A stretch of 64,000 nt of DNA from Schmidtea polychroa (lineage: Eukaryota). Shown here in pieces: positions 8,868 to 61,934 of this stretch (positions are counted from its first letter, which is position 1; every line of letters begins with the position of its first letter). The position numbers and the translations under genes are program-made. The stretch is taken from NCBI GenBank assembly GCA_044892525.1, contig CM097886.1, positions 60,698,001 through 60,762,000 of the forward strand. Direction: 5' to 3'. The notes under the pieces are model-generated. The model searched no databases and was not told the DNA's origin. It saw nothing but the letters and a program-made list of their open reading frames with translations.

Positions 8868-9865
8868 ATTATTACCAATGGGTCCCTTTTATTCTTGGTT
8901 TGCAATGTATTATGTTTTACATTCCAAAATTAATATGGCAGATGTTTTGCTTCAATCAAGCAGGAACAAATCTTGATACAATTATTAAATTATCAATGAA
9001 AATGGCGGAAATACCGATTAGTGAAAGGCGAGCGGAAAACGAGAACATTGCAAAAATTATTGAGAACATGCTAGTTCTCCACAGGGACTACCGAAACAAT
9101 AAAATGGCGAACATTCGGCGATCCATGTTTAGTAAGTGCAGTTTATTCATGAGTAGTAAACGATTGGGAACGATGCTTGTGTTTTCGTATTTTTTAACAA
9201 AATTGTTATATCTAACCAATGGGATCGGGCAGCTGTTTATGATTCAATCCATTTTGGGATTTTACAATTACCTACCGACCTTTGGATCGCATCTTTTCTG
9301 GTACATTCTATCAGGAACTGAATTGGAAACTCAAAACTATTTCCCAAGAGTGGTATTTTGTTATTTGAAAAGAATCCGCCACGTTGGTGCACACAATAAC
9401 TACGTAGCTCAATGCGTCCTCCCAGTGAATATGTTAAATGAGAAAATTTATACATTTCTATGGTGTTGGATCTTACTGGTGGCATTTGTTACATTTATTA
9501 GCATACCTCTTTGGATTCATAGACTGTACAGAACCGATGTCAGAGAAAATTACATTGGAAACTTTCTGCAAATGCTCAATTCATATGATGAACAGAAAAA
9601 GCCGTTAATACACAAGTTTATCAATGACTTTCTCAGGCACGATGGATTGTTTTTGTTGCGCATGATTTCAAACAATGCCGGCGACTTAATCGCTGCCTAT
9701 TTGGTAAACAATTTGTGGGAGATTTATTTAAATAAATATCAAAACAGAAATTTGAAGAAGGATATTTTTTCAGTGTCAAATCAATTGAAAATAGACGAAG
9801 CAAATAACTCAAGTTCTAATAGCCAAAACCTTTACCAAGGTTCACCTATCATGAATTATCTGTGA
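8868..9865 (+). CDS. inx: Innexin, coding exon 3 (spliced protein about 437 aa)
   Basis: After a 48-bp intron (8820-8867, containing an in-frame TGA) the frame reads N-YYQWVPFILGLQCIMFYIP...FPRVVFC...QCVLPVNMLNEKIYTFLW...FLRHDGLFLLRMI, all innexin hallmark motifs. Stop TGA at 9863-9865. Confidence 0.95.
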
Positions 9866-28697: not shown

Positions 28698-29471
28698 TTA
28701 TAAATATTTTCTATTAATAAACAATAAATAATACGAGAGAATCAATAAAAACAAAAATGAAATAGGCAACCCCAAAAGAATCACAGATTCAAATAAAATA
28801 TTATCAACAGTAATATTGAAATTTCTGGATTTGAAAAATTCCCTATGATTTTCGTCTGTTAAAAAGAATGTATTGAAACAGCACCAGTAATATTCTTGAT
28901 GGGAAAAATCTAAAATAATATAACCAAAAACAATGAAAATAGATCCGATGTCGAAGATCTCAATAAAGAATCTACGAGAAAGAATAATTATCATCCAAGA
29001 TGAGTAAATAAAAATCCCACCAAATGTTAATAATGAGTTGGCAAAAATATGCAATGGTTGTCCGAAAAGTGATTTGTGTACGCAAAAGTTCCATATGAAA
29101 ATAGCAATTCGTAAATGGCTCCTCATAATTCCATTTATAATGCTGTCGTTGTACCGATTGTCAGACTCCTGAATAATTAGATTCCGCCAAACCCCATAGC
29201 GAACATTCAATTCCAAAGTGAAGTTCACGACCACTAACCTGTGATCCACAGGATTTTCAAGTCCATGTAAAGTGAATTTGAAAGCGTATATATTGTCAAA
29301 CAGCATGGAAATTGTGTACATCAGCATGAATATTGCTGCCATGAAGAAGAATATAATTAAAAATGTTTTTTGTAAAATGTTCAAAGTTGCCCACCAGATA
29401 TCGTTTGCCAGTACTGGAGCAGATAAGATACTCCAAGAAAAGACAACTTTTCTCTCATAAAAACCGAGCAT
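28698..29471 (-). CDS. Orphan 257-aa multipass membrane protein
   Basis: Uninterrupted ATG-initiated ORF in a 70 percent AT context, with 4-5 hydrophobic segments. A YGVW motif after TM1 is loosely reminiscent of the claudin/PMP22 GLW motif. No confident family. Confidence 0.55.
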   Translation of the reverse strand: MLGFYERKVVFSWSILSAPVLANDIWWATLNILQKTFLIIFFFMAAIFMLMYTISMLFDNIYAFKFTLHGLENPVDHRLVVVNFTLELNVRYGVWRNLIIQESDNRYNDSIINGIMRSHLRIAIFIWNFCVHKSLFGQPLHIFANSLLTFGGIFIYSSWMIIILSRRFFIEIFDIGSIFIVFGYIILDFSHQEYYWCCFNTFFLTDENHREFFKSRNFNITVDNILFESVILLGLPISFLFLLILSYYLLFINRKYL

Positions 29472-29694
29472 TGTCTAATAAATTTTAAAAATATTTTTCT
29501 TCATAAAATTTCCATCTTTCAATAGATAATCAATTAAATAATTATATTATTTTTAAAAATAAAATTTGTTTAAAATTGTAATTACTAATTACTGCTCAAA
29601 GTTTAAAATCAGAGTATTTAATAAATATAAATCCAAAATTCATAATTAGAAATGCAAAAATATTAAATAAAACTTAAAAACAATATTGTAGTGA

Positions 29695-29736
29695 GCCGTT
29701 ACACGGCCTTAACAAAATCTATATAAATATTATATA
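29695..29736 (+). other. Diverged copy of the planarian spliced-leader (SL) exon
   Basis: GCCGTTACACGGCCTTAACAAAATCTATATAAATATTATATA versus the 42-nt Schmidtea SL1 exon as recalled from memory (GCCGTTAGACGGTCTTATCGAAATCTATATAAATCTTATATG): 36/42 identical, ungapped. Not followed by a GT donor. Confidence 0.8.
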
Positions 29737-30390
29737 CAAAAAGTAACGTAGCCTAAATGGGCGATCAATAGCGAATGAGGATAAATTATAACACAATTAT
29801 GGTCAATAAAATATCACCTATAATTGCACATTAGTTGGACATCTCAGTTGACTCTATCTCATTCCAAGAGTCAATCAAAATTCATACAATCAGCTATTAC
29901 TTCCTCTTATCAATCAGGCTCTATTAATCAATCTCAGATGAGTAAAGCAAATTCGATGCCATGTTATTATTATCAAGATTAACTGTATTCGGCTCCTAAT
30001 AGTTTTAGTGTTGGCTCTCATAGACCAACATCTTCATCCATTCCCCGTTCGCAATCACCATAATTTCAAATGGGAAAGACACAGTCAAATTTAGTTCTGC
30101 AAAGTAAATCTATTTCAGAAGTAATTCAACCAAGTAGTGTAGAATCTGGCATTGGATTCATGAACATGTAAATTCCCAAAATCTCTCCAATTGACCCAAG
30201 CTGTTGAAATGGTTCCGTATTTTCAAAGATATTCCATATGCTTATAATTCGCGAAATATGTAATGAATCCTAACAATAATATGAACCCGAATAGATTTGT
30301 TAACCACTACACAAATCAATTATGGATCCAAGAAATAACGAACAAATAATTTGATTGAGATATCCGAATAAATCGGAAGCTTAATAATTA
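29737..30390 (+). pseudogene. Probable processed pseudogene of a trans-spliced mRNA (S/Q/P/N-rich protein)
   Basis: Directly follows the SL copy. The frame from 29881 reads FIQSAITSSYQSGSINQSQMSKANSMPCYYYQD*LYSAPNSFSVGSHRPTSSSIPRSQSP*FQMGKTQSNLVLQSK... with scattered stops, mostly TAA, consistent with CAA-to-TAA decay. Confidence 0.55.
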
Positions 30391-30909
30391 ATTGTTATTT
30401 TATATGATCAGTATTGAACTATTAAATTCATTTTTTTGTTGATCAGCGAATATGATATTTTTTTGATTTATAATGATTTATAAATAAATCATTTCTTATT
30501 GATATTAAGTAGAAGTTTGTTTTACATTGACTGGTAAACTTGTAAATTTTAAAATCTTAAAATTGTAAATAGAAATATTTTGAATATTGTTCGTATTATT
30601 AAATAGTATTTTGAATCTTTGAAATTAATTTGAAATGACGTTTTTGGAAATGATTAAATCTAACACCACCACAAATATTATAATATTTCATTCATTTTTA
30701 TTATGAAAAAGTTCAAAAATTAATTTTATCCAAAGCAAATTTTTGATCTTTGGTCAGAATGAAAATTAATAAAAAATTTAAAAAAATTTTAATGACAAAT
30801 AAAGTAATCAAATTATTCAAAATTAATGGATTACTTCAGTGTTGTCCAAACTGTGTGCCAAATTTTGGAAATAAGTATATTATAAAAGATCTTGATGATA
30901 ATTATGATT

Positions 30910-33900
30910 CTCCAGGCCACTCTCTCTCTCAACGAACCTTTGCAATCGAACCGTACCATAACCGTACCCCTCTTATTCAGACCGATGCCGCTGATGTCGA
31001 TAACGTTGATATTGATGATGTTCAATTTACGCCCTACCCCATGTGTGACGAAGTCAATGGCTCACTTCTTCCAACTACCAACCGAGTCCAATCCGTGATT
31101 CATGAACAGCGGACCACACCCACCACTCCCAATGACAAGCTTATCTCAGCATCATTCATCAACGAATTCCATGACCTTATAGCTGTTGACTCCCAAATAA
31201 AGGTAACGGGGAAATCTCTTCAAGTCATCAACGACTATATCCCTGTTAATACACACCCATACCTTACCCCACACCCGCTGTAAAGGTGCGCAACTCTCGT
31301 ACCCCGAGAAACATGAAGGCACAGGATATAACAGACCCAACGCTATTTCGCCTGACCTATCGAGGCAAACTCGAATGCATATCGACATTCCTTACAGCTT
31401 GGTGTGGAAGCATTTGTATATATGACAGAGCCAAGTTCCTCTCCCACGCCTGGGAAATTCACAATGTTGAAATTAATGAAGACTCACACGTCGACTGCTA
31501 CCAGTGCAGGCCCAAAAAGGGAAATGAAAGATTCACCATGAACCACGTCAAATTCAAAGATCTTTATAATCATGTTGACCACTGCGCGCACGACGTTCAA
31601 ATCGACAAAAAATTGATCAACAAGGTTACTCTAAAAATCTCTCCTTCCCTCCGCCTCACCTGCAACAGTGCCAATAAAAACTGCAGTAAATGTCTGACTA
31701 CTTTCCCCATCGACACCACCATCTCTGACATCTTCACCCACATGAAAGAACTTCACCGAAACCTAGTCTTCGACCTTTATGACGACTTTTACTGTTTCTG
31801 TAGCTCATGGATCCTCTTCCAAGCCATCCAATCTCATGTCGTCCAACACCACCCCACAGCTCACACGCCCGCTACACACAGCACCTCAGCCCAAATTGAT
31901 GTACACACCCCTTCCTTTGATGCAATAAGGCAAATTATGTTTACCGGAGAAGAACAACTTCGATACTCACCTAGTGAAATTATTGAGCTACCACTTCCCG
32001 ACACTTTCCTATTCAGCAACAACATAGACCAGGAATCGGTATGATGGTCACAGCACGCAATTAAAGATTATATCTTCAAATATGCAATGAGGAAGTCAAC
32101 CATATTTGTAGATCCCTTCATCGGCAACGCGCTTATTCAACACAATTACAACCTTTGCCTTTTTCCCCTTCAAAGACTTCGCCGACTGGAACGAGATTAT
32201 CATACCGATGTCCAATGGCGGGGACAGCTAGTTCCTCTTGTTCCTCGATAAACACCGCAATCTGGCAGTAATCATAGACCCAATGAGTGAAGACAGTCTC
32301 TCATCACATCATGATATTGCCATCAACCTCTTAGACACTATTCTTAGCCTCCAAAATATCGTCAACCAAGTCACCTTGTAACTAACGAATTTTGAATACC
32401 CACGATGCTTGACACCACTTGAGTCTGCACAATACATATGCCACATACTGAAATGCCTTAACTCACACACTCCCATCACCACTCCTGACCTACCCCACAT
32501 GCTGAAAGATATGAGGCAGATTATTTCCACTTTCATCTATAATAGGATACCTATTAGTAATATATGTAAATACCACATATTCTTCATAAACCTCACTGAA
32601 CAACTTTCCCAAAACATAACAAACACCCAATCAGCCCTTAACGAGATTGAATGAATCAATGGCAACGTCAACCCAGACAGATACAAGACAATAAAACCAG
32701 CAGACGCCACGCACAAAAAACTGAAATCAAAGAATGAGCTAGATTCCGCATGAAACCCAAAAACGAGATTGGGAAAATCATTGGGGCAGAATTCCTACCT
32801 CCACATAGGTCCACAATGGCCAATATACTTCTTCTCTTCGGGGCTATACTTACACCCATATCCGACCTAACTGATTTATCGTTTCCTTCATTTCCGGAAA
32901 ATACATCTTCTATCCGTATCAACATTGCGACCTTCGCTCCACTATCGCCTCACTGGACAACACTGCACCATGCATCGACAAGATTACCTTATCTGACTGG
33001 GAAAAGATATGCCCCGATATGGAACCCCTTCTTGCTATCTGTAACAATGTACATTCCACCTCGATATACCCCCTCCCAACTGGAAGACCTTTCGGACCAA
33101 ACTGATACTTAAACAAGGGAAATATGAAACGAGCCATGAAGCTAGCTCGTGGCGCCCTATCTCTGTCATGAACACTGCATACCGTATCTTCTCCTCTGTC
33201 CTTAATCATCGCATCCTGTCCTGGATCAGGCAAGGTCACCTACTTACCACTAACCAAAAAGCCATTGCCCCCCCCCCATGGCTGCGCCGAACATAACCTA
33301 ACTCTTCACCTCATCAAAGACTTCTCCGTCCGCAATAAAACGGAACTCCATATCATCTGGTTCGATATCACAGATGCTTTTGGCTCCTTACCCCATGATC
33401 TTATCTGACACACTCTGACACACATGAGCCTCCATCAACAAACCATCAACCTCATCATGGATATGTACTCCAATGTCAACACTATCTTCGAGTGCGAAGG
33501 GAATTGTCCACCTCTGTGCCTATTTTCAAAGGTGTGAAACAAGGATGCCCACTTTCTATGACCCTCTTCTACCTTTCGATTGACTTCATCTTAAGGATTA
33601 TACTACGCGTACACCCGTTCTTTTTTCACGAACACAATATTAGCATCATGACATATGCTGATGACATTGTCCTCATCTCCGACTCCCTCTCCTCCATTAC
33701 CGCTGCACTAGCTGAGACTGTGCGGCTGGTCCAAAAGATTAATCTTCGGTTTAAACCATCTAAATCTGGCTATTTTTCACTCAACACTGTCGACACCCCC
33801 CCCCCCCCCCCATCACACTCTATGGCGAAAGATTACCAGTTATCGACGACTCAAACCTCTACCGTTATCTCGGCGTCGACTTTTCGCACAAAAATAAGCA

Positions 33901-35130
33901 CAACATCGATGAAAGACTCGACAACGCTCTGAAAAACACAAAACTTATCTTCCAATCTTACCTGCACCAGGGCTGAAGTTAATACAGAAGTTTATACACT
34001 CCCGCCTCATCTTCACTTTCCGCAACTGCGAAATCAGACATATGACGTTAGACTCTAAACCCCTTACAAGAGGGGTCGCGCGATACCTTGGCTTTGACCA
34101 AAAACTTAAAGAATTTTTTAGAACCGCGATGGTTGATAAAATAATGCAATTAAACAATAATTTCATTTATGCCTCGGTAAAATTGGGAGGGGATGGGACT
34201 CACTTCAGCGATCGATGAATATCATATCCAGAGCATTGTTCACATGATCAGGTCTCTCAGCTCCATAATTAGCCTGATCCATGCTGAAAGATGGATCCGG
34301 ATGAAATGCCAAGGTTACATTGCAAAAGCAATCAGTGAAAGCAGCACCATTGCCTTTTTCATTCAAACTGACACTTTGTCTGACGCCCAATACCTCTTTC
34401 TTATTAAAGCGAGGAACAACCTGCTTAAGCTAAACTACTCTCCCCACCGGCTTAAGACCAATAAGTCAACCACTTGTCGACACTGCCTCACACACCCTGA
34501 AATCCAGGCGCATATCTTCAACCACTGTGCTGCAAAAATCAGCGCCCGTCGCAATAAACACTCCAATGTCCTACAGACCATATCTGATATACTCCTTTCC
34601 CTCAACTTTATGGTAGACGTAGAAAGGCCTCCGGACGGGGTATCAACGAGGCTTATACCTGACCTCCTCATTAAGTCTAAGCAACTTGTATCTCCTTGAA
34701 ATCAAGGTGCCCTATGAATCCGCTGCCAACTTCAACAATTCTCGTGACAAAAACTTCGAAAAATATAAGGACCTCGTCATTGAAATCGGACATCTCCATA
34801 AACGCAAGACCTCTCTTTCTTCCCTTGTAGTAGGCACTTTAAGATCATGGGATAAGCAAAACGATGCAATCCTCAAGAAAATTGGTCTTTCTAAGTCTGA
34901 AATTAAGAGCCTCGCGAATAAGGCATGCACCGCCGCGATCCAGAGCAGCTATAACATCTATAAGGAACACACCTACAAGGAATCAGCGCAATGAAAATCC
35001 CATCACCCCCATCACCATACCCTTTTATTAATCAACTTATTGCTCACGTGTATTATTCATACATTCTTTAATGTTTTCATATATTTTTCTATTGCTCACT
35101 ATTATCCTCATTATTACTATAATAAATCAA
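30910..35130 (+). mobile_element. RLE-type non-LTR retrotransposon (NeSL/R2-like), near full length but frameshifted
   Basis: C2H2-like fingers (31286-32044). Ulp1-like protease motifs (IIIPMSNGGDS*FLLFLDK...IIDPM, about 32190-32290). RT (WRPISVMNTAYRIFS; HGCAEHN; WFDITDAFGSLPH; GVKQGCPLS; YADD at about 33653). CCHC finger CRHC...AHIFNHC. Endonuclease PDLLIK...LLEIKVPY...LVVGTL, stop at 34994. Confidence 0.92.
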
Positions 35131-36399
35131 TTTCTTATTTACCATTAATATTTGCAGTATATATTTTCGTCCTGTTCCTTTGGCTGGTATGCTAGGCCCC
35201 ATAATTTATATTATAGCCAAACCGCACATCCACCGGAACCGTCTCGCTGGACCCGGATCTACCCGGACCCTCCTGGGCCGGCCACCTGCCACCGGGACCT
35301 ATCACTCGCTCGAGCTGCCAATGGAACATGGAAACTGCCTCCTGAACCGGCAACCCACCACCGGAACCGATCACATGCTGGACCTGCCACCGATACGTGC
35401 CACAAACGGTACCCGCCTGCCACCGATTGATCCCCTTTCGGAACTTATTGTGTTTATGCTATGATTTAAATTGCGACTTTGCGTTTTCTAAGCATGCGAC
35501 AATGATCCTGACCTTAATCACATTTAATGACATTGATCCTGACCCGATGATACCACTCACTTATATTCCCTCCTATACATAACGGGGGGTCCAGCTTTCG
35601 TCTCCGAGTCATATATCCTGGACATGTATGCTGGACTTATCTATATCATTTATTTATATATTACATTATTACCTTATTATAACCGGCTCGCGGAGAGCTG
35701 ACCTCCATAGCTGGATATGGAACATTGTTAAACAACGTTTGACGCTTGAGTCCTAGACTCGGCGCCCTATGAATGTTATGTAAAATCTTTTTATAATGAA
35801 GGGTTGAGAAGTTCTCTCCTTATGCTTTAATTGCCCTGTAATGTTATAAACCAGTTAAAATAAACTTTTCCTAGATCAACATTCCTTTCTCTCCCCATTT
35901 GTCGCCACAATCACTTGATCCTTTTGTCCGCTCCAACCATTTACTTGGCTTTGGTTCGCCCAAGCCCCAACACTCAATCCTACTTTTGATCTAGCCCCTT
36001 GCGAGAGGAAAATTTTATTGGCCTGGTTCCTGATGACAAGAAATCTTGCACTTATCCCAGTTGCCACTTATGAAAGATACTTAAATTGGTATGGTTCTCG
36101 ACAAGGAAAAAAACTTTCCTCCTTAAAAAATTTAGTCTATTATTACTTATATATACTTATATACTTTTGTTTGTTGTTTTTTCGTAGATAATCTAGTGAT
36201 AATTCTTACTATTGTTTAAACGAGATATTTTAATTAATTCATAGTTAATCTATTTAAAACTATATTTATCATAATTTATTATAATTTACCAATGCTTTTT
36301 GAATTCTCTATTATTTTAGTAAATAATGCTGCTAAATCCAACCACACATTGTGAAAGGTTCTCGATATCATACTCGAGTTCTTTAACCTTCATTTGGTC

Positions 36400-38185: not shown

Positions 38186-38321
38186 NNNNNNNNNNNNNNN
38201 NNNNNNNNNNNNNNNNNNNNNNNNNNNNNNNNNNNNNNNNNNNNNNNNNNNNNNNNNNNNNNNNNNNNNNNNNNNNNNNNNNNNNNNNNNNNNNNNNNNN
38301 NNNNNNNNNNNNNNNNNNNNN
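38186..38321. other. Assembly gap (N run)
   Basis: 136 Ns. Confidence 1.
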
Positions 38322-40423: not shown

Positions 40424-43400
40424 CAGGGCCGTGCCTGACCGGCGTTCATTAGGTTCGCCGCACGCAGGCGGCCAAATTTAAAGGCGGCCTGACGACCAGA
40501 AAAACAAAAAAAAATTAAAAAGCAAAATAACAATGTTAATATATAGTCATAGTCATATATAATCGAAGTAAATTGTCAAATAGTTGAGTGTTGTTGTCAA
40601 TTCGTCAATTGTAATCATTATCATTGCGCTCTATGGCGTACTAAATTTTTTTTAGATGCGCTTATCACAGAATATTATTTTGTGGGCTTATTGGCGAGCG
40701 CATGCTGGCGCAGTGGCCGCATAGAACTCCGTAATGTAAGAATAAATAGAGATGAACACTCTTTTTAACCCACGATGAACAGAGTACATCTCTCTTTATT
40801 CTAACTGATTTTAACCTTACTGAGTTCTACGGGTTCTACGCGCCAGCATGCGTTCACATGCGCTCGGCATAGGCCATATCAGAATCAAGTGCAAAGTGCA
40901 AATTCATCTTTCACGTATGTTCAGTTGCTCTACCTGGCTGTAGGTAAGTTGGGAGCGTGTGTGTGTGTGTGTTATAATATGTGATTTACCTGTCTGTCTA
41001 TAGCACGGCAAGCGTCTCAGCTGCGTGGCAATAAAACCTTATTCAAACTCGGAAAGCGGTTGGGCAGATTCCCTCACCGCCTCACCCAACGCTTTGTTAC
41101 AAAAGGTTGAAAAAGGTAATGAATTTAATTCTACAATAAATTAATTTCAATATAAATCCTTATTGATATTTTTAAACATTTTAGTAAAATGCCTAAGAAT
41201 GACTGGGAGAAAAACGAAAAGATTGCCTGGAGCACAGTATAAAAGAAAGCGAGAAGAAAAACAACATGTTGCTAATAAAATTTTTGGTTCACTAACCAAA
41301 TATTTGGAAAAACCTCCAGAAATGCAAAATGCTTGCAGTAGCCAAGCAAATCTAAGCTGTGAATTTTTTTCCAATGAAAATGAATTATCTGCCGAAAATA
41401 CAAATGATAATGACAATATTAGTAGTAATGATGAAATAGGAGATATTGCAGTTACAAATATCGACGATATCACTGAAATTGATTAAGAATATTTTGCTAT
41501 GTGTATAGAATTAAATGATCCAGCTTGCTGGCCTTTAACACTTACCAATAAAATGCTGGATATTTTAATTGAAAAAGGCCCTATTCAAAATATACAATCT
41601 ACATATCCACTAAATGAATTTGGAAGATCATTTTCAAAGGTTTATTTCTATAGAAAACTGCCAAATGGTGAAAAATTTAATTGTGAGTGGTTAATCTATT
41701 CTCCAAAAAATGATGCCACATTTGCTTCTGTTGTAAATTATTTGGCAAACAAGAAATAAAATTAGTTAATGAAGGCTTCAACGATTGGCAACACATATCT
41801 GACAACTTATCTCGTCACGAAAAAACATCGCTGCACATAGAAAATTGCACCTGTTGGAAAAAATTGGAATTAAATTTAAAAAGAAAAACTACAATTGATA
41901 AGAATATGCAACGGTATTATGACGCCGAGAAAAAACGATGGTGTCAAATTGTCAGGTGCATGATATCTGTGGTACAATTTCTAGCAGGACAGTGTTTAGC
42001 TTTTAAAGGTTCTTCCAGCAAATTGTACGAAAAAAATAATGGAAATTTTCTGAAAGCAATTGAAATGATAGGAAAATTTGATGATATAATGGTAGACCAC
42101 ATAAAACGCGTACAAGAACCAATCGCTTTAAAGAACCACATGCCACATTACCTGGGAAATCGCTTTCAAAATGAAATAATCACTATCCTTGCCACCCAAA
42201 TTCAAAAATATATATTAACATCAATAAAATATTTTTCAGTCATTTTGGACTGTACGTCGGACACTGGACATGTCGAGCAAATTACAATGATTATTAGGTA
42301 TGCACATATTAAAAATTATGAAGTTGAAGTAAGAGAAAATTTCATTGGCTTTTATCAAGCTGAAAAATGTACTGGAGAATCTTTTTACGACTTCTTAATT
42401 CAAAAGTTAAACTATCTTGAATTAAATATTAACGATATGAGGGGCCAGAGATACGATGATGGGTCTAATATGTCCCGAAAACATAAAGGATTGGAAAAAC
42501 GAATTTTGGACAATTATCCACGAGCTCTGTTTATGCCATACAATGCGCATACATTAAATTTGGCCATTAATGATGCAGCTAAAGTTTCGTTTTCAACGGT
42601 GGATTTTTTCAGTAATGTATCTGCAATATACAACATTTTCAGTGAATCACCATTTAGATGGCAAGTTTTATAGAAAAATGTAAAATCTTTAACATTGAAA
42701 CAAGTTAGTGAAACTCGATGAGAAGCAAGAATTAAAGCGATTAGACCACTGCAAAATGAATTAAGTGAAATTTATGACAGCCTTATAGAAATAGCTGAGG
42801 AATCTTCAATGCCAACAGTTCAACATGAAGCTGAATGTTGGGCAATGAAACTTAAATCTTATAAATTTATTTCTTCAATAATAATATGGTACGAAATCTT
42901 GGAAAAGGTAGATTTTATTAGCAAAATGATGCAGAAAGTTTCTTGGAATATCAGTTCGTGTGCTGAATCAATTAAGGAAGTTTTGAAATTTTTCAAAAAG
43001 CATTAGAAATGACGAAAGTTTCGAAAATTATTTGCAGATTTCTAATGAACTTTGTAAAGCACTTGAAACAGAACCTGATTTTCCTGCTGAAATTAGTGTA
43101 CGTCGCCGACATCACTGAAAACAATTTAGCTATGAAGGAGATGAAGATATTCAATTTACTCCAAAAGAACATTTTCAAATTAATTTTTTCTATGTAATAC
43201 TAGATTCAGCTATTTCATCTCTTACCACCCGTTTTGAAACTTTGTCAAATTTCAGAACTTCAATGACTCAAGAACGTCTCAGTAAAATATAAATTATTGC
43301 AATTGAAAGTGAAATTGCTGATTCCTTAAATATTGAAGGGGCAATTGAAGAATTTGCCTCTAAAAAATCACGTAGAGTAAATTTTTGATTGTAATATCAT

Positions 43401-46733: not shown

Positions 46734-49239
46734 TTATAAGAATGATTTTTTCCTGGCTTTCATGTCTGCAAATTCTTCTATTGCTGCCTCCAAATTTAGG
46801 TTTGCTACAACATTATTTTCAATTGAAATAATGGCCAAATTATTCAACCTATCTTCCGTCATAGTAGATCGCAAATACGTTTTTATTAGTTTTAATTTAC
46901 TAAAACTTCTTTCACCACTCGCAACACTAACAGGAATTGTTACGAGGATTCGCAAAGCCACCCACAGATTTGGTACTGTACTTTTCAAATTATTATCATT
47001 GATAAATTGTAAACATATTAAAGGATCTTTAACATCATCTGGTACCAATTGCTTCAATGATTCGATTTCCTCGCACAATTCTATTCCATTTATATCACTA
47101 CTGGCCTCATTTGTTAATTTCAGATGTAAATCTTTGCAACTCTTCAGCAAATCACAACGATTTTTATTATTGTGAATATTGAACAAAAAACCCCACGAAT
47201 CTTCGAAATCTTTCATTTGCTGAAACCTTTCTGATATAGATATCAACGATTGATCCAGCATAACATTAAAAACATGATTTTTATAATATTTTTCTGGGTT
47301 ATTTACATTTGGAGTTTCATCGTCACACTCATAACTAAATTGTTTTTGTCGCCTTCTGATTCTTACAGCTTTAAATTGTGCGTTCACGTTTAATAGCGCA
47401 GCGAGATCTTTGGCCGATTTTAAAGCATCAGAAAAACCGGAGTCTCTATAATTTTCTAGAAAAATCTTACAATTCCGAAGAAGCTCGATGGCGTTACTCA
47501 TATCAAATGTAGCTTTTTGCATGGATTTGCTGACAATATTAAATTTTGACAAAAGTACGTACCAGACAGATAATGTTAACAAAAACTCGAAATCTTCTAT
47601 TTTTTCAGATAAAGAGCTAGCTTCTGAAACAACTGCAGCATCTAATATTGTGTCTTGCAACTCATTTAATGCGTTTCTAATTTCCGTGATTTCAAACATT
47701 ATTGCTTTAATGCATTCGATTCTACATTCCCACCTCGTTTCACTTAAAGGTTTAGGATTTAATGATTTAATATGTTTTTTCAATATATTCCATCGTCCAA
47801 CAGATGCAGCAAACAAAGTATAAATTCTTTGAACATATCCGAAAAAATTTATGCACATTATTGAAGAAGAAACACTATCACCAATTAGTAGGTTAATTGA
47901 GTGACAACCGCAAGGCATAAAAAACGCTCTTGGATTTTCTTTGAAAATTCTAGCTTGCACTCCTTTAATTTTACCTTTCATATTAGCGCCGTTATCATAT
48001 CCTTGGCCTCTACAGTTTGCTAATTCCAAATTGAATTCTTCTAAACTTTCAGAAATATCATCATATAATCCTTTTCCAGTAGAATCAAAAACTGGTTTAA
48101 AGGATACAAAATGCTCTTTTATTTCCATATCCTCAACATCATAAAATCTTAAGGTTATGGAGAGCTGTTCGATATGGCTTATGTCAGGTGTGCAGTCTAA
48201 AATAATCGAAAAATATTTCGATTTACGAACAGAATCCAAAATATGACTTCTTGTCATATCACCAAGTGTACTTATTAATTCGTTTTGTATAGTTTTTCCA
48301 CAATAATGAACATGAATTTCTTGTGAGACCACCCTGCGCAAATGCTCATTTAATGGTAAATCAAATTTTCCTAGAAGTTCAACAAGGCCTAAAAAATTTC
48401 CATTATGCGGAACAAATAACTTATCACAAGAACCCCGAAATGCTAAATTATTTTTTGACAAAAATAATGTTATGTTTATTAATCTTGCTAGTACCTTTTT
48501 CCAATTATATTTTTCTTGGACTATCAAAGACTGCAAATTCTTATCAATAGTTTTATTGCCTTTTAATCTTAATCGAGTTTCTATCCAGTTTTTTTTCACA
48601 TTTTAAATGTGAAACTGACCGTTCGTGCATTTTCAAGCTGTCGTGAATATTTTTCCAATCCGATAAACCAGATTTGGCTAGATTTGACCTACCTGATGGA
48701 TCAAAAAGTTTGCAAAAAAAACAAAATACAGAATTTTTGGATTCTGAATAGTGCAACCATTTTCTTAGGAATTTTTCACCATTACTTATTTGACGATAAA
48801 AAAGCGAATTGGAAAAGCTTCGATTATTTTCATCTCTTGGATAAATATGTTGTTGATTACACCTTTCTTCGTTTCCATATAAGTCAGTTACAACTATATG
48901 GTCGATTTCCGTATGTTTTAAATTTTGTGGCCATAGCCCAATATCATTATAATTTAAAATATTTTCAAATACAGAATGAGTTGAATCACTAGGAACAATT
49001 ATTTCAGTTCCGTGAGAAGACATTAAATTATCCTCATTGATAATATTACAATTTTCAGCTTCTGATGACACATTACCTATATCGTTCTCTGAGCTTGAAG
49101 ATATTGACTCGAAATGTTGATTATCATCGGCTACTGATTTACTGGAATTAAAATATTTCAATATTTTATCGTGCTTATCAGTGTTGGGCTGAAAACGAGA
49201 ACTGAGAGTTTGTTTTAATCGATCGAAAATACCTAACAC
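46734..49239 (-). CDS. hAT transposase split into ORFs 48553-49239 and 46734-48599 by a single frameshift
   Basis: TTF-type Zn finger (RKWLHYSESKNSVFCFFCKLF...GLSDWKN...HERSVSH). Core motifs FSIILDCTPDISHIEQ, CRGQGYDNGANMKG, PCGCHSINL, SETRWECR and TIPVSVASGERSFSKLKLIKTYLRSTM. Removing one A from the A8 run at 48589-48596 (plus-strand T8) fuses the frames (CEKNWIET). Confidence 0.92.
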
Positions 49240-50329: not shown

Positions 50330-50830
50330 AGGCAGATCCCTGCTCAAAATCTTTGAAGAACAATTTAAATATTATGGCAAGTGTGGATTAACTTGAAAAT
50401 AAGGGCCAATCCCTGCGCAAATTTTTCAAAGGATAATTTAAATATTGTAGGAAGTGTAGAACAATAATTACTAGCTGGGAAATAAGGACGGATCCCTGCA
50501 CAAAATTTTATAAGAGAACAATTAGAAATACCCGTAATTGAGGACCAACAACGATCCAAAAATAGCATATATAGTGAATAAGGACGTAAGACCTTCTATC
50601 GGCAGTCTAGAACCCGAAAAGAAAATCCAATGGGGAGTAGTTTTAGTAATAGAGCTCACCTGCTCATTGTTTTTTCACCTTTGTGTACAGTACCAACATG
50701 GTCGTCGCCATGGGTACACAAATGGTTTAAATTGCAATAGTCATGGAGGTGCTTAGGAAAGAGTCGAACGATTATGATTACCCTTAACGTATTTTAAATT
50801 GTAAAAAGGACACCCCTAAGTAACCAACAT
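50330..50830 (+). repeat. Unclassified interspersed repeat, copy 2, with three internal gatccctgcNcaaa-type units
   Basis: Homologous to 13250-13740 in inverted orientation. Units near 50335, 50410 and 50490. Confidence 0.75.
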
Positions 50831-52233: not shown

Positions 52234-53673
52234 TTACGGCTGAGAATCATTGATAACTGACGACCTACGAAACGAATTGCGCCTCGAAGTCTGATTAGGC
52301 CGTTTTTGTTTTAATCTACTTGTACAACTATGGGAAATCTGGCTATCATTTGAATTTATGGAATGCCTAGGTTTGAAATCACAATCTGATTGTAGGATAG
52401 GTACTTGAATAATTTCATTGTTACTATTTCCATTCGATAATTGAACATAGACTTGTTGGTCGTCTAATCCAGTCTCTCGATTGTAGAAATAATTGAAATT
52501 CGACACGATAACGGGAACAGGAAGAGCGATTGTAAGTACTCCAGCGATGGCACATAAACTACCTACTAATTTTCCCCACATCGTAACAGGATGCATGTCT
52601 CCATACCCGACAGTTGTCATTGTAACAACTGCCCACCAAAATCCATCAGGAATGCTACGAAAGAAAGTTCCATCTGTATCAGATTCGACAAAATACACAG
52701 CACTACTAAATAAAATAACACATATCAATAGAAAGAATATCAGAAGACCCAATTCTTGAGTGCTGGCTTTTAGTGTTTTACCTAACACTTGCAAACCTTT
52801 GGAATGGCGGGATAGTTTGAAGATTCGAAAAACTCTTACTAATCGAATGACTCGTAAAATAGCAAGAGATGTGGCTTGGTTACTTGTGCCATTATCACTA
52901 ACAAGTGCTGTACCAAGGGTTATGAAATAAGGCATTATAGCAACGATATCGATGAGATTCATTATATTTTTAAAGAAACCAAACTTTTCTGGAGCTGAAG
53001 AAAATCTGATTAATAACTCAAAAGTAAACCAAACAATACAGCAAGTTTCAATGATAAAAAACGGTTCAGAAAACCTTGGAATTGATTCCTCTTCGACTTC
53101 AATGGTGTCTTCTGGATCTGTTGATATGGTTTTGTTAATGATTCGATAATTTCGAAACACGGGTAAAGTTTCCACACAAAATATTATGATCGACATGACT
53201 ATGACAGTGACAGATATAATTGCCACAAATCTGGCAGGCATCGAACTCTCTGGATACTCAAACAACAACCAAACCTTTCTTTGCATTTCATTTTCCGGCA
53301 ATAATTTTACTTGTTCTTTCACAAAACCCTCATTTTCTCGGTATAGATCAATCGCTTCTTGACCCAATTCAAAAAATCGAATTTCCTCCAAAAATATATC
53401 AATCGGCACATTGACTGGCCGTCTCAGTCGGCCTTGGCTTTGATAAAAATACAAAATCGAATCAAAACTCGATCGGTTTCGGTCAAAAAAATATTCATTC
53501 TTAACTGCATCGTAGTATTTGTTTCGTTTGTTTTCGTTTCCCAACAAAGTATTGGGATATCTGTTAATGGTCGAGAGATATGTTTCAAAAATCAGTCCAC
53601 TGACATTAATGATAAGCCGTTCCTTGTCTGAACTGACGACATTCGGTTGAGATTTCTTTGAATCTTCTTTCAT
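52234..53673 (-). CDS. Shaker: Shaker-type voltage-gated potassium channel (Kv1/KCNA family), 479 aa, uninterrupted CDS
   Basis: T1 domain ([14 protein letters not shown]...[43 protein letters not shown]). S4 [24 protein letters not shown]. Pore [16 protein letters not shown]6 [14 protein letters not shown]. Confidence 0.98.
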
Positions 53674-54570: not shown

Positions 54571-54781
54571 NNNNNNNNNNNNNNNNNNNNNNNNNNNNNN
54601 NNNNNNNNNNNNNNNNNNNNNNNNNNNNNNNNNNNNNNNNNNNNNNNNNNNNNNNNNNNNNNNNNNNNNNNNNNNNNNNNNNNNNNNNNNNNNNNNNNNN
54701 NNNNNNNNNNNNNNNNNNNNNNNNNNNNNNNNNNNNNNNNNNNNNNNNNNNNNNNNNNNNNNNNNNNNNNNNNNNNNNNNN
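54571..54781. other. Assembly gap (N run)
   Basis: 211 Ns. Confidence 1.
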
Positions 54782-60454: not shown

Positions 60455-61934
60455 TAGGGTTTTCCGACCTATTTAGACACTTTAACGATCAAATTAGACA
60501 TTTCAAAAAAGTGATATATATTTCACAATCAATTTAGACAATTTTCCAATCAATTTAGACAATAAAATTAAGAATAAGTTTGGCAAATCCACAACATTTT
60601 TATTCATATATCAATTCCATATTTCTACTTCTTTCGATATAAGTTAACATTCTCCTGAAATACCCTCCACAATCTTCGCTTGTTAGGATGCCATAATCAA
60701 ATCATTTAATTCATTTTCGTTGTTTGCATTACCTCTGAGCACATGATTCTTCCATTTACTGAAACAATTCTCAATAATGTTAAGAAATGGAGAGTAGGGG
60801 GGTAGATATACAACTTTGATGTTTTCAGCTTCACATATGGAAATAAAACGAGCACAATGATGTATATGAGCGTTGTCGATGATAAAAATTGGATCTGTAA
60901 TTCCTTTGTTTATCGATAAATTGTTTAACTCTACCATATAACTCAAAAATTTCTCCCCGTTTATAGGACATGGATTTATTTCATACTTTAGAGTTCCATA
61001 CTTTGATACTGCTGCAATAACGGAAATGTTGCGAGATCTTGTCGCCGGTGTATTTACAATGACACTTGTACCAACTAAACTCCTCCCTCGTTTGACTCTT
61101 GTGCAAACCTGGAACCCAACTTCATCCACAAATACAAATGCTTTATCATCATTATTTAAAAGCATACTTAAAAATCTCTCAGCGTAGATACGTCTCTTCT
61201 CCAATGTCGTAGGATCGTTTCTCTTAACTGGTGAAAGTGTTACGCATTTCAAAGTATAATGGAAATTGCGTAAACAACGATCAATGGTGGGGATAGATAC
61301 ATTTTTCCCAATATTATTTATCGTCATCTCAACCAAGTTTTTCAGTGTCAGAATTGGGTTTTCATCAACCCATTCTTTAATAGTTTGTTTTTCACTCGGC
61401 GTCAATTTCGATCTTTTATCGCCGCCCCTTTTCAGTGGTGTTATTCTTCCTTCAGATTCCCAACTTTTTACGATATTATATACACTTGTTCTTTTAATTG
61501 CGATCATTTCAGATATGCTGGAAATCGTAATGTTCTGAGAATAAAGCGAAATCACACGCTCTCTTGCGTGCTGGTCAATTGTATCATACTTTTTTACACG
61601 CGAATCTACACTGACAGTCGTTTCCAATTCAACAGAGGCATTATTTGATTCGTCCCTCACAGCATTCACCCCCGGGGATGAGGGCTCGTTTGTGTCAATA
61701 ACGTTATTGTTTATGTGCCGGTCATTTACGTCATTTACCGCTGTTTCTTCGTTATTATTCATGGGTATCAAATGCAGAGGGAATGTAGACATATTTTAAA
61801 TTGTTTAATAAGTATTCTTTAATTGATTGTCTAAATTGATTGGAAAATTGTCTAAATTGATTGTGAAATATATATCACTTTTGTGAAATGTCTAATTTGA
61901 TCGTTAAAGTGTCTAAATAGGTCGGAAAACCCTA
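60455..61934 (-). mobile_element. Tc1/IS630-family DD34E transposon with 109-bp TIRs
   Basis: TIRs 60455-60563 and 61826-61934 differ at one base. TA TSD on both sides. Confidence 0.95.
60683..61792 (-). CDS. Tc1/IS630-like transposase (369 aa, C-terminus frameshifted)
   Basis: HTH region, FVDEVGF, IFIIDNAHIH and YLPPYSPFLNIIENCFSKWK (D-34-E spacing). The expected tail LTSEDCGGYFRRMLTYIERS... lies in another frame past the stop. Confidence 0.92.
   Translation of the reverse strand: MSTFPLHLIPMNNNEETAVNDVNDRHINNNVIDTNEPSSPGVNAVRDESNNASVELETTVSVDSRVKKYDTIDQHARERVISLYSQNITISSISEMIAIKRTSVYNIVKSWESEGRITPLKRGGDKRSKLTPSEKQTIKEWVDENPILTLKNLVEMTINNIGKNVSIPTIDRCLRNFHYTLKCVTLSPVKRNDPTTLEKRRIYAERFLSMLLNNDDKAFVFVDEVGFQVCTRVKRGRSLVGTSVIVNTPATRSRNISVIAAVSKYGTLKYEINPCPINGEKFLSYMVELNNLSINKGITDPIFIIDNAHIHHCARFISICEAENIKVVYLPPYSPFLNIIENCFSKWKNHVLRGNANNENELNDLIMAS

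Follow-up and report, generated by a model that had tools for sequence, protein, structure and literature searches.

Retrotransposons of the NeSL clade target spliced leader (SL) exons in nematodes. NeSL-1 of Caenorhabditis, like SLACS/CRE of trypanosomatids, interrupts a genuine SL gene within its SL exon, and the remainder of the gene follows the 3' junction of the element. In planarians, the LIN/R5 lineage of the NeSL clade targets 28S and tRNA genes, and the small-RNA-gene targets of this lineage have diversified (PMC4640811). Flatworm SL RNAs are recognised by a leader with a terminal AUG, a GU donor next to it, hairpins and an Sm-like motif, and stray SL-bearing loci that stem from reverse-transcribed trans-spliced RNAs have been reported in parasitic flatworms (PMC12582326). 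The recycled cDNAs of dinoflagellates are relics of the same kind (Slamovits and Keeling 2008, as cited in PMC12582326). No report of such SL relics in a free-living planarian was found in the literature.

The locus described here lies in a window of 64 kb (the whole stretch of planarian DNA that was analysed), which is AT-rich with a GC content mostly between 0.23 and 0.34. It consists of a block headed by an SL-like 42-mer and of a decayed retrotransposon further downstream. The block is tentatively read, at rather less than even confidence, as an older retro-insertion of an SL-capped RNA, coding or non-coding, which would be independent of the retrotransposon.

The spliced-leader-like 42-mer

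The block that carries the leader comprises the following features:

29695-29736, + strand: SL-like leader of 42 nt, GCCGTTACACGGCCTTAACAAAATCTATATAAATATTATATA, with the 3' end ATA, then CA
29737-30390, + strand: non-SL body of the SL-headed block, GC 0.33 and AT-rich on both sides, with a coding signal not above chance
30367-30372, + strand: AATAAA, possibly a poly(A) signal; the GC-0.33 block ends about 20 nt later

The leader GCCGTTACACGGCCTTAACAAAATCTATATAAATATTATATA occurs a single time in the 64-kb window, where shuffled sequence is expected to contain it 0 times. The earlier note on this DNA had reported a 42-nt segment matching planarian SL1 without gaps at 36/42 positions; the segment is real and unique in the window, and the same score is obtained again, with mismatches at positions 8, 13, 18, 20, 35 and 42. 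Both counts refer to one and the same planarian SL1 sequence, which serves as a provisional reference. The planarian SL exon is reportedly 42 nt long, and by this length the SL-likeness stops exactly at nt 42, where non-SL sequence is joined to it. The start of the leader, in turn, coincides with the edge of a GC composition block.

The two halves of the leader differ in what they contribute to the match. The GC-containing 5' half is the flatworm core CCGTTA..CGG.CCTTA, and the first 19 nt (CCGTTA..CGG.CCTTAAC) agree with the cestode leaders in the supplement of PMC12582326 in 16/19 aligned columns with one gap. The cestode 20-mer reaches an equal score at one unrelated site in the window and therefore the cestode likeness, taken alone, is weak; it appears supportive, short of decisive. 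The 3' half is AT-rich and resembles many sites. A search of metagenome contigs and viral contigs with the SL pattern gave 0 matches.

These properties bear on the simplest alternative, namely that the SL likeness arose by chance and that the block is unrelated old repeat debris. Such a coincidence would be helped by an AT-rich 3' half that matches many places, by the tie of the cestode 20-mer and by the provisional nature of the planarian reference. Against it stand the ungapped 36/42, which is far above the next best site in the window (none reaches 27/42 against the SL1 reference), the presence of the flatworm core in precisely the half that contains GC, and the position of the match exactly at the edge of the composition block. 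Chance is accordingly a very improbable source of the likeness.

The leader is not part of an intact SL RNA gene

The leader terminates in ATA where flatworm leaders have AUG, and the two nucleotides after it (nt 43-44) read CA rather than GT. A GT is first met 6 nt downstream, in the weakly donor-like context AAAAA/GTAACG. Neither of the Sm-like motifs RAU(3-6)GR and UVUUUGG occurs in the 200 nt past the leader, and the stretch 29695-29825 has no stable fold (MFE of -15.5 kcal/mol, z = -0.21 versus shuffles), hairpins not being predicted. An Rfam scan gave no match at the leader, and the window holds no SL gene array. Because there is no GT, no Sm-like motif within 200 nt, no stable fold and no Rfam match, 29695-29736 is not an intact SL RNA gene, and the statement of the earlier note that the segment has neither a GT donor nor an obvious Sm site and is not an SL RNA gene is upheld. 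An SL RNA gene that had decayed by the same 14% by which the leader differs from SL1 would, by estimate, retain its GT about three times in four. A donor-less, full-length leader is a better fit to trans-splicing followed by reverse transcription than to an SL RNA gene, since the SL-likeness ends at the exon end and is accompanied by no donor, Sm site or fold.

The body of the SL-headed block

The earlier note had described the sequence after the leader as a decayed open reading frame rich in S, Q, P and N, and this description is not borne out. The longest stop-free stretch in 29737-30390 measures 52 codons versus a mean of 62 in dinucleotide shuffles (P = 0.73), and the fewest stops plus frameshifts with which 29775-30346 can be read is 5 versus 5.9 +/- 1.4 in shuffles (P = 0.41). 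The protein-atlas recognition score of the 52-aa piece falls within the range of shuffled proteins, and no homologue of this piece was found in the 90%-clustered protein set, where the candidates were only proteins of 29-91 aa. As both the open stretch and the count of stops and frameshifts equal those of shuffled sequence, a former ORF in the S/Q/P/N-rich frame is not supported. A 190-codon ORF after 14% drift would look much like the frame in 29737-30390, and therefore the sequence is compatible both with a former ORF and with the lack of one.

The remaining marks of a retrocopied mRNA are likewise missing from the block. The AATAAA at 30367-30372 carries little weight, as this hexamer has a frequency of 3.1/kb on the + strand and the copy is thus unremarkable; no A-run lies 3' of it and no poly(A) tail was found for the block, nor is there a target-site duplication round it above background. 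At a divergence of about 14% the lack of a poly(A) tail and of a target-site duplication is weak evidence.

A body that shows no coding signal would also suit a dispersed, non-autonomous repeat with an SL head, comparable to a SINE, of which the block would be one copy rather than a copy of the mRNA of a single-copy gene. SINEs with heads derived from snRNAs do exist. SL RNA promoters, however, are external, so that an SL head would bring such a repeat no promoter, and a second copy of 29737-30390 is not present within the 64-kb window. A repeat of this type is considered a distinctly unlikely source of the block.

The NeSL-clade retrotransposon downstream of the block

The DNA that follows the block contains these features:

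30391-30780, no strand: spacer of AT-rich DNA (GC 0.18) that holds short tandem repeats as well as an imperfect palindrome (30682-30778) and has a composition like that of the outer flanks (0.14 and 0.23)
about 30781-36139, + strand: dead non-LTR retrotransposon, R2-like and assigned to the NeSL clade, about 400 nt downstream of the SL block and co-oriented with it
30792-32041, + strand: ORF1, with one frameshift near 31248 and zinc-finger-like motifs of Cys/His type (CCPNC at 30840-30854, C2H2-like at 31682-31756)
32042-32044, + strand: lone stop codon that separates ORF1 from ORF2, both of which use the same frame
32045-34991, + strand: ORF2, disrupted 10 times (by 3 stops and by 7 frameshifts)
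33654-33665, + strand: reverse transcriptase (RT) motif YADD, with RVT_1 at E = 5e-13
34475-34528, + strand: CCHC motif
34547-34561, 34655-34666 and 34695-34706, + strand: restriction-like endonuclease motifs RRNKH, PD and E-I-K, respectively
34995-36139, + strand: 3' UTR, ending in AAAAAATTTAGT
36165-36186, + strand: T-rich run TTTTGTTTGTTGTTTTTT, 25 nt past the element end, a possible decayed poly(T) tail whose membership in the element is uncertain
30770-30780 and 36124-36134, + strand: direct repeat TAAAAAATTTA of 11 bp, with identical copies at the two composition borders of the element

Solved R2 proteins rank first among the PDB matches of the RT and also of the CCHC region, and the N-terminal part of ORF2 is homologous to the part of its relatives that bears the Ulp1/C48 protease. 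One of these relatives, P0006 (Peptidase_C48 and RVT_1, 1077 aa), aligns with the element from residue 6 to 1070; positions 32148-33266 are aligned to its residues 6-383, and Pfam gives no Peptidase_C48 match in the broken pieces. The best relatives in the libraries share 44-48% identity over about 100 residues and are proteins of about 1,050-1,130 aa with Peptidase_C48 and RVT_1. The R2-like matches of the RT and CCHC regions, the endonuclease motifs and the Peptidase_C48 plus RVT_1 relatives together place the element, as judged from its sequence, in the NeSL clade. ORF1 returned nothing in a Pfam search and in a homologue search of the 90%-clustered protein set. The RT piece likewise has no match in that set, and a close family member is absent from the protein libraries.

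At its 3' end the element has the motif AAAATTTAGT in common with one planarian LIN family, and the LIN alignments show poly(T) tails (PMC4640811 S6 Fig). Four relatives (L001-L004) contain no SL and no similarity to 29600-32200. In L004, a Logan contig that encodes P0007 of a distant NeSL-clade relative, a T/A-rich tail is followed by a tRNA 3' half, GGTTCGAGCCCCACG, and P0007 would thus appear from its sequence to be another tRNA-targeting member of the lineage. Inside the RT frame of the planarian element, a run of 16 C at 33796-33811 encodes a run of proline. Frameshifts make up 8/11 of the disruptions of the element, an unusually high share, and this excess might partly reflect assembly indels.

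A co-oriented NeSL-clade element downstream of an SL-like exon raises the question of whether the 42-mer is what remains of an SL RNA gene or pseudogene, possibly one that served as the target of the element in the manner of NeSL-1 or SLACS/CRE. The orientation fits, the LIN/R5 lineage has diversified small-RNA-gene targets (PMC4640811), and a weak donor-like GT is present 6 nt past the leader. The AUG-GU junction, the Sm-like motif and the fold of such a gene are nevertheless all missing, and the leader is separated from the body of the element by no less than 400 nt and by as much as 1,050 nt. Nor is there a convincing remainder of an SL gene in the 3' flank of the element, where Rfam and tRNA scans found no RNA gene at the junction. 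Compared with the leader, this flank has a similarity in the top 2% of windows, confined to the AT-rich half, which matches many sites; an SL remainder at the 3' junction was rejected, as the likeness is not above background. It would also take a coincidence for an insertion to fall precisely at the end of the exon, and no SL gene array accompanies the leader in the window. A nematode-style insertion into an SL gene was rejected as the leading explanation in view of the full exon upstream, the missing gene remainder and the gap of at least 400 nt, and an SL gene origin of the 42-mer in general is held to be doubtful, with only a small share of the probability.

Composition, borders and relative ages

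The GC content along the locus runs from 0.14 through 0.33 in the SL block and 0.18 in the spacer to 0.43 in the element, its 3' UTR included, and falls to 0.23 beyond it. This profile looks like two separate islands in one AT-rich background. The repeat TAAAAAATTTA may be a target-site duplication of the element or a microhomology of the target with the 3' end of the element, and is suggestive only, as it consists of A and T alone and the chance of a match at both borders is roughly estimated at 0.05. No target-site duplication brackets the SL block and the element in combination. The 5' border of the element is not firmly at 30781, because the frame of ORF1 remains open for about 30 codons into the AT-rich spacer.

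The relative ages of the two blocks can be approached through their decay. ORF1 and ORF2 together hold 3 in-frame stops and 8 frameshifts in 1,343 codons. In a simulation of neutral substitution, 1.3-6.8 stops accumulate at 1-5% divergence, rising to 13 at 10% and to 17 at 14%, and 3 stops or fewer were never obtained at 10% or more. Having only 3 in-frame stops in 1,343 codons, the element is implied to have decayed by about 1-5%. The leader differs from the SL1 reference at 6/42 positions, or about 14%. A leader inserted together with the element should carry about one mismatch, not six. The age argument fails if the source was a variant SL or if the SL1 reference is imperfect.

One insertion or two

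The earlier note does not mention the element, which offers another possible origin of the SL-capped RNA. A single event could have copied the leader, the next 1.05 kb and the NeSL-clade element together (29695 to about 36139 or 36186), either from a trans-spliced transcript of the element that was copied up to its capped end or through a jump of its R2-type reverse transcriptase, made at the 5' end of the element RNA, to an SL-capped RNA. Template jumping by the R2 reverse transcriptase is established, and the two blocks lie 400 nt apart, are co-oriented and follow each other in the order expected from target-primed reverse transcription with a terminal template jump. By a rough estimate, the chance of finding a co-oriented SL block about 400 nt upstream of a retrotransposon is 5-10%, and such an arrangement is therefore unlikely to come about by accident. 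In parasitic flatworms, 597 of 1,179 stray SL loci adjoin LTR or LINE elements, and trans-splicing of retrotransposon transcripts has been put forward to explain this (PMC12582326). The ORF1 frame that is open into the spacer would, moreover, allow the 5' region of the element itself to be AT-rich.

A joint origin has to contend with the discordant decay of the two parts, 1-5% in the element as against a 14% difference of the leader from the SL1 reference, and would need a variant SL that was already devoid of the conserved terminal AUG. The leading stretch, with GC values of 0.33 and 0.18, also contrasts with the 0.43 of the remainder, in which even the 3' UTR is included. The candidate direct repeat brackets 30781-36123 only and no duplication surrounds the whole unit, and the 5' junctions published for planarian LIN elements carry no SL (PMC4640811 S6 Fig). 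Two events are favoured because there are two GC islands of discordant ages, with TAAAAAATTTA round the element alone and nothing round the combined unit. A single event is consequently regarded as rather unlikely. The proposition that a planarian NeSL-clade retrotransposon gains a capped 5' end by way of SL trans-splicing, or that its reverse transcriptase jumps onto SL-capped RNAs, is viewed with still more reserve and appears improbable.

A proposed retro-insertion of an SL-capped RNA

Under the favoured explanation, that of an older and independent retro-insertion, some RNA would first have received the spliced leader by trans-splicing. The SL-capped RNA would then have been reverse-transcribed up to its capped 5' end, and the copy would have integrated into AT-rich intergenic DNA, where it would have given rise to the block from 29695 to about 30390. 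The insertion would be old, as indicated by a leader divergence of about 14% if canonical SL1 was the source. The NeSL-clade retrotransposon, the younger of the two, would have landed later and independently, about 400 nt downstream.

Several observations count against an independent insertion: the 52-aa piece led to no parent among proteins of 29-91 aa, the block shows neither a poly(A) tail nor a target-site duplication, and an ORF is unsupported. The earlier note had proposed the retrocopy of an SL-capped mRNA. The part of this proposal that stands is the donor-less SL, for which a retro-origin is the best fit, and the part left unsupported is the mRNA itself, as neither a coding signal nor a poly(A) tail, a target-site duplication or a homologue was found. 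To call the block the mRNA of a parent gene is thus unproven.

If the retro-origin is true, the locus records a planarian RNA that was trans-spliced and then returned to the genome as a DNA copy. Collected across the genome, such fossils could serve to date SL variants and to list past targets of trans-splicing, and would show annotators of SL RNA genes which SL matches to discard. Taken alone, the locus is a single decayed example of a relic already described in kind from parasitic flatworms and dinoflagellates, and its possible link to the NeSL-clade neighbour is the only part that could go beyond the routine. If SL-capping of the element or a template jump were the true cause, SL-headed copies of elements would remain in the genome, and the SL system would be tied to the way in which elements are expressed or copied whose usual place is in uncapped Pol I or Pol III transcripts.

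Other features of the window

A 257-aa ORF that starts with ATG occupies 28698-29471 on the - strand; it is multi-pass hydrophobic in appearance and has no Pfam match, and its start and the SL-like leader are 224 nt apart on opposite strands. Another stretch with weak SL likeness, CCGATAGAAGGTCTTA...TATATATG, is located at 50561-50602 on the - strand, with a Kv channel gene on one side and a hAT transposase on the other, and is followed at once by the Sm-like ATTTTTGG. Its core agrees at 14/16 positions, and as about 0.1 such core matches are expected it is taken as a chance resemblance rather than as a second SL site. The Kv channel is encoded at 52234-53673 on the - strand by an intact, intron-less ORF of 479 aa (BTB_2 and Ion_trans), within which 52498-52611 strongly matches the Rfam model of the potassium-channel RNA editing signal (91 bits, E = 1e-17). 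ORFs of hAT-type transposases (DUF4371, hAT dimerisation domain) are found at 46734-49239 on the - strand and at 41864-42673 on the + strand, and an intact 369-aa DDE_3 (Tc1/mariner-like) transposase with HTH domains at 60683-61792 on the - strand. A large open exon at 8900-9865 on the + strand comprises most of an innexin (Pfam Innexin, E = 2e-48). Runs of N are present at 38186-38321 and 54571-54781.

Comparison with known systems

With the SL RNA genes of flatworms the locus shares the 5' core CCGTTA..CGG.CCTTA and the length of 42 nt, the latter as reported for planarians. Unlike in these genes, the leader lacks the AUG, the GU donor, the Sm-like motif, the hairpins and the tandem array. 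As with NeSL-1 and SLACS/CRE, it has an SL exon and, downstream of this exon and in the same orientation, an element of related type. It differs from both in that the exon is whole, a gene remainder is found on neither side and a gap of at least 400 nt separates the exon from the element.

The element resembles the LIN/R5 elements of the NeSL clade (PMC4640811) in its zinc-finger-like motifs, a region with homology to the part of relatives that bears the protease, its RT and CCHC regions and its PD..ExK endonuclease, and departs from them in that this copy is not within a recognisable rRNA, tRNA or snRNA gene. The stray SL loci of flatworms (PMC12582326) are partial and come from parasitic species, whereas the leader described here is a full 42 nt and belongs to a free-living planarian. 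Like those loci, it is a leader without the rest of an SL RNA gene that is joined to unrelated sequence, and just as they are often found beside LTR or LINE elements, it is adjoined by an element of the NeSL clade.
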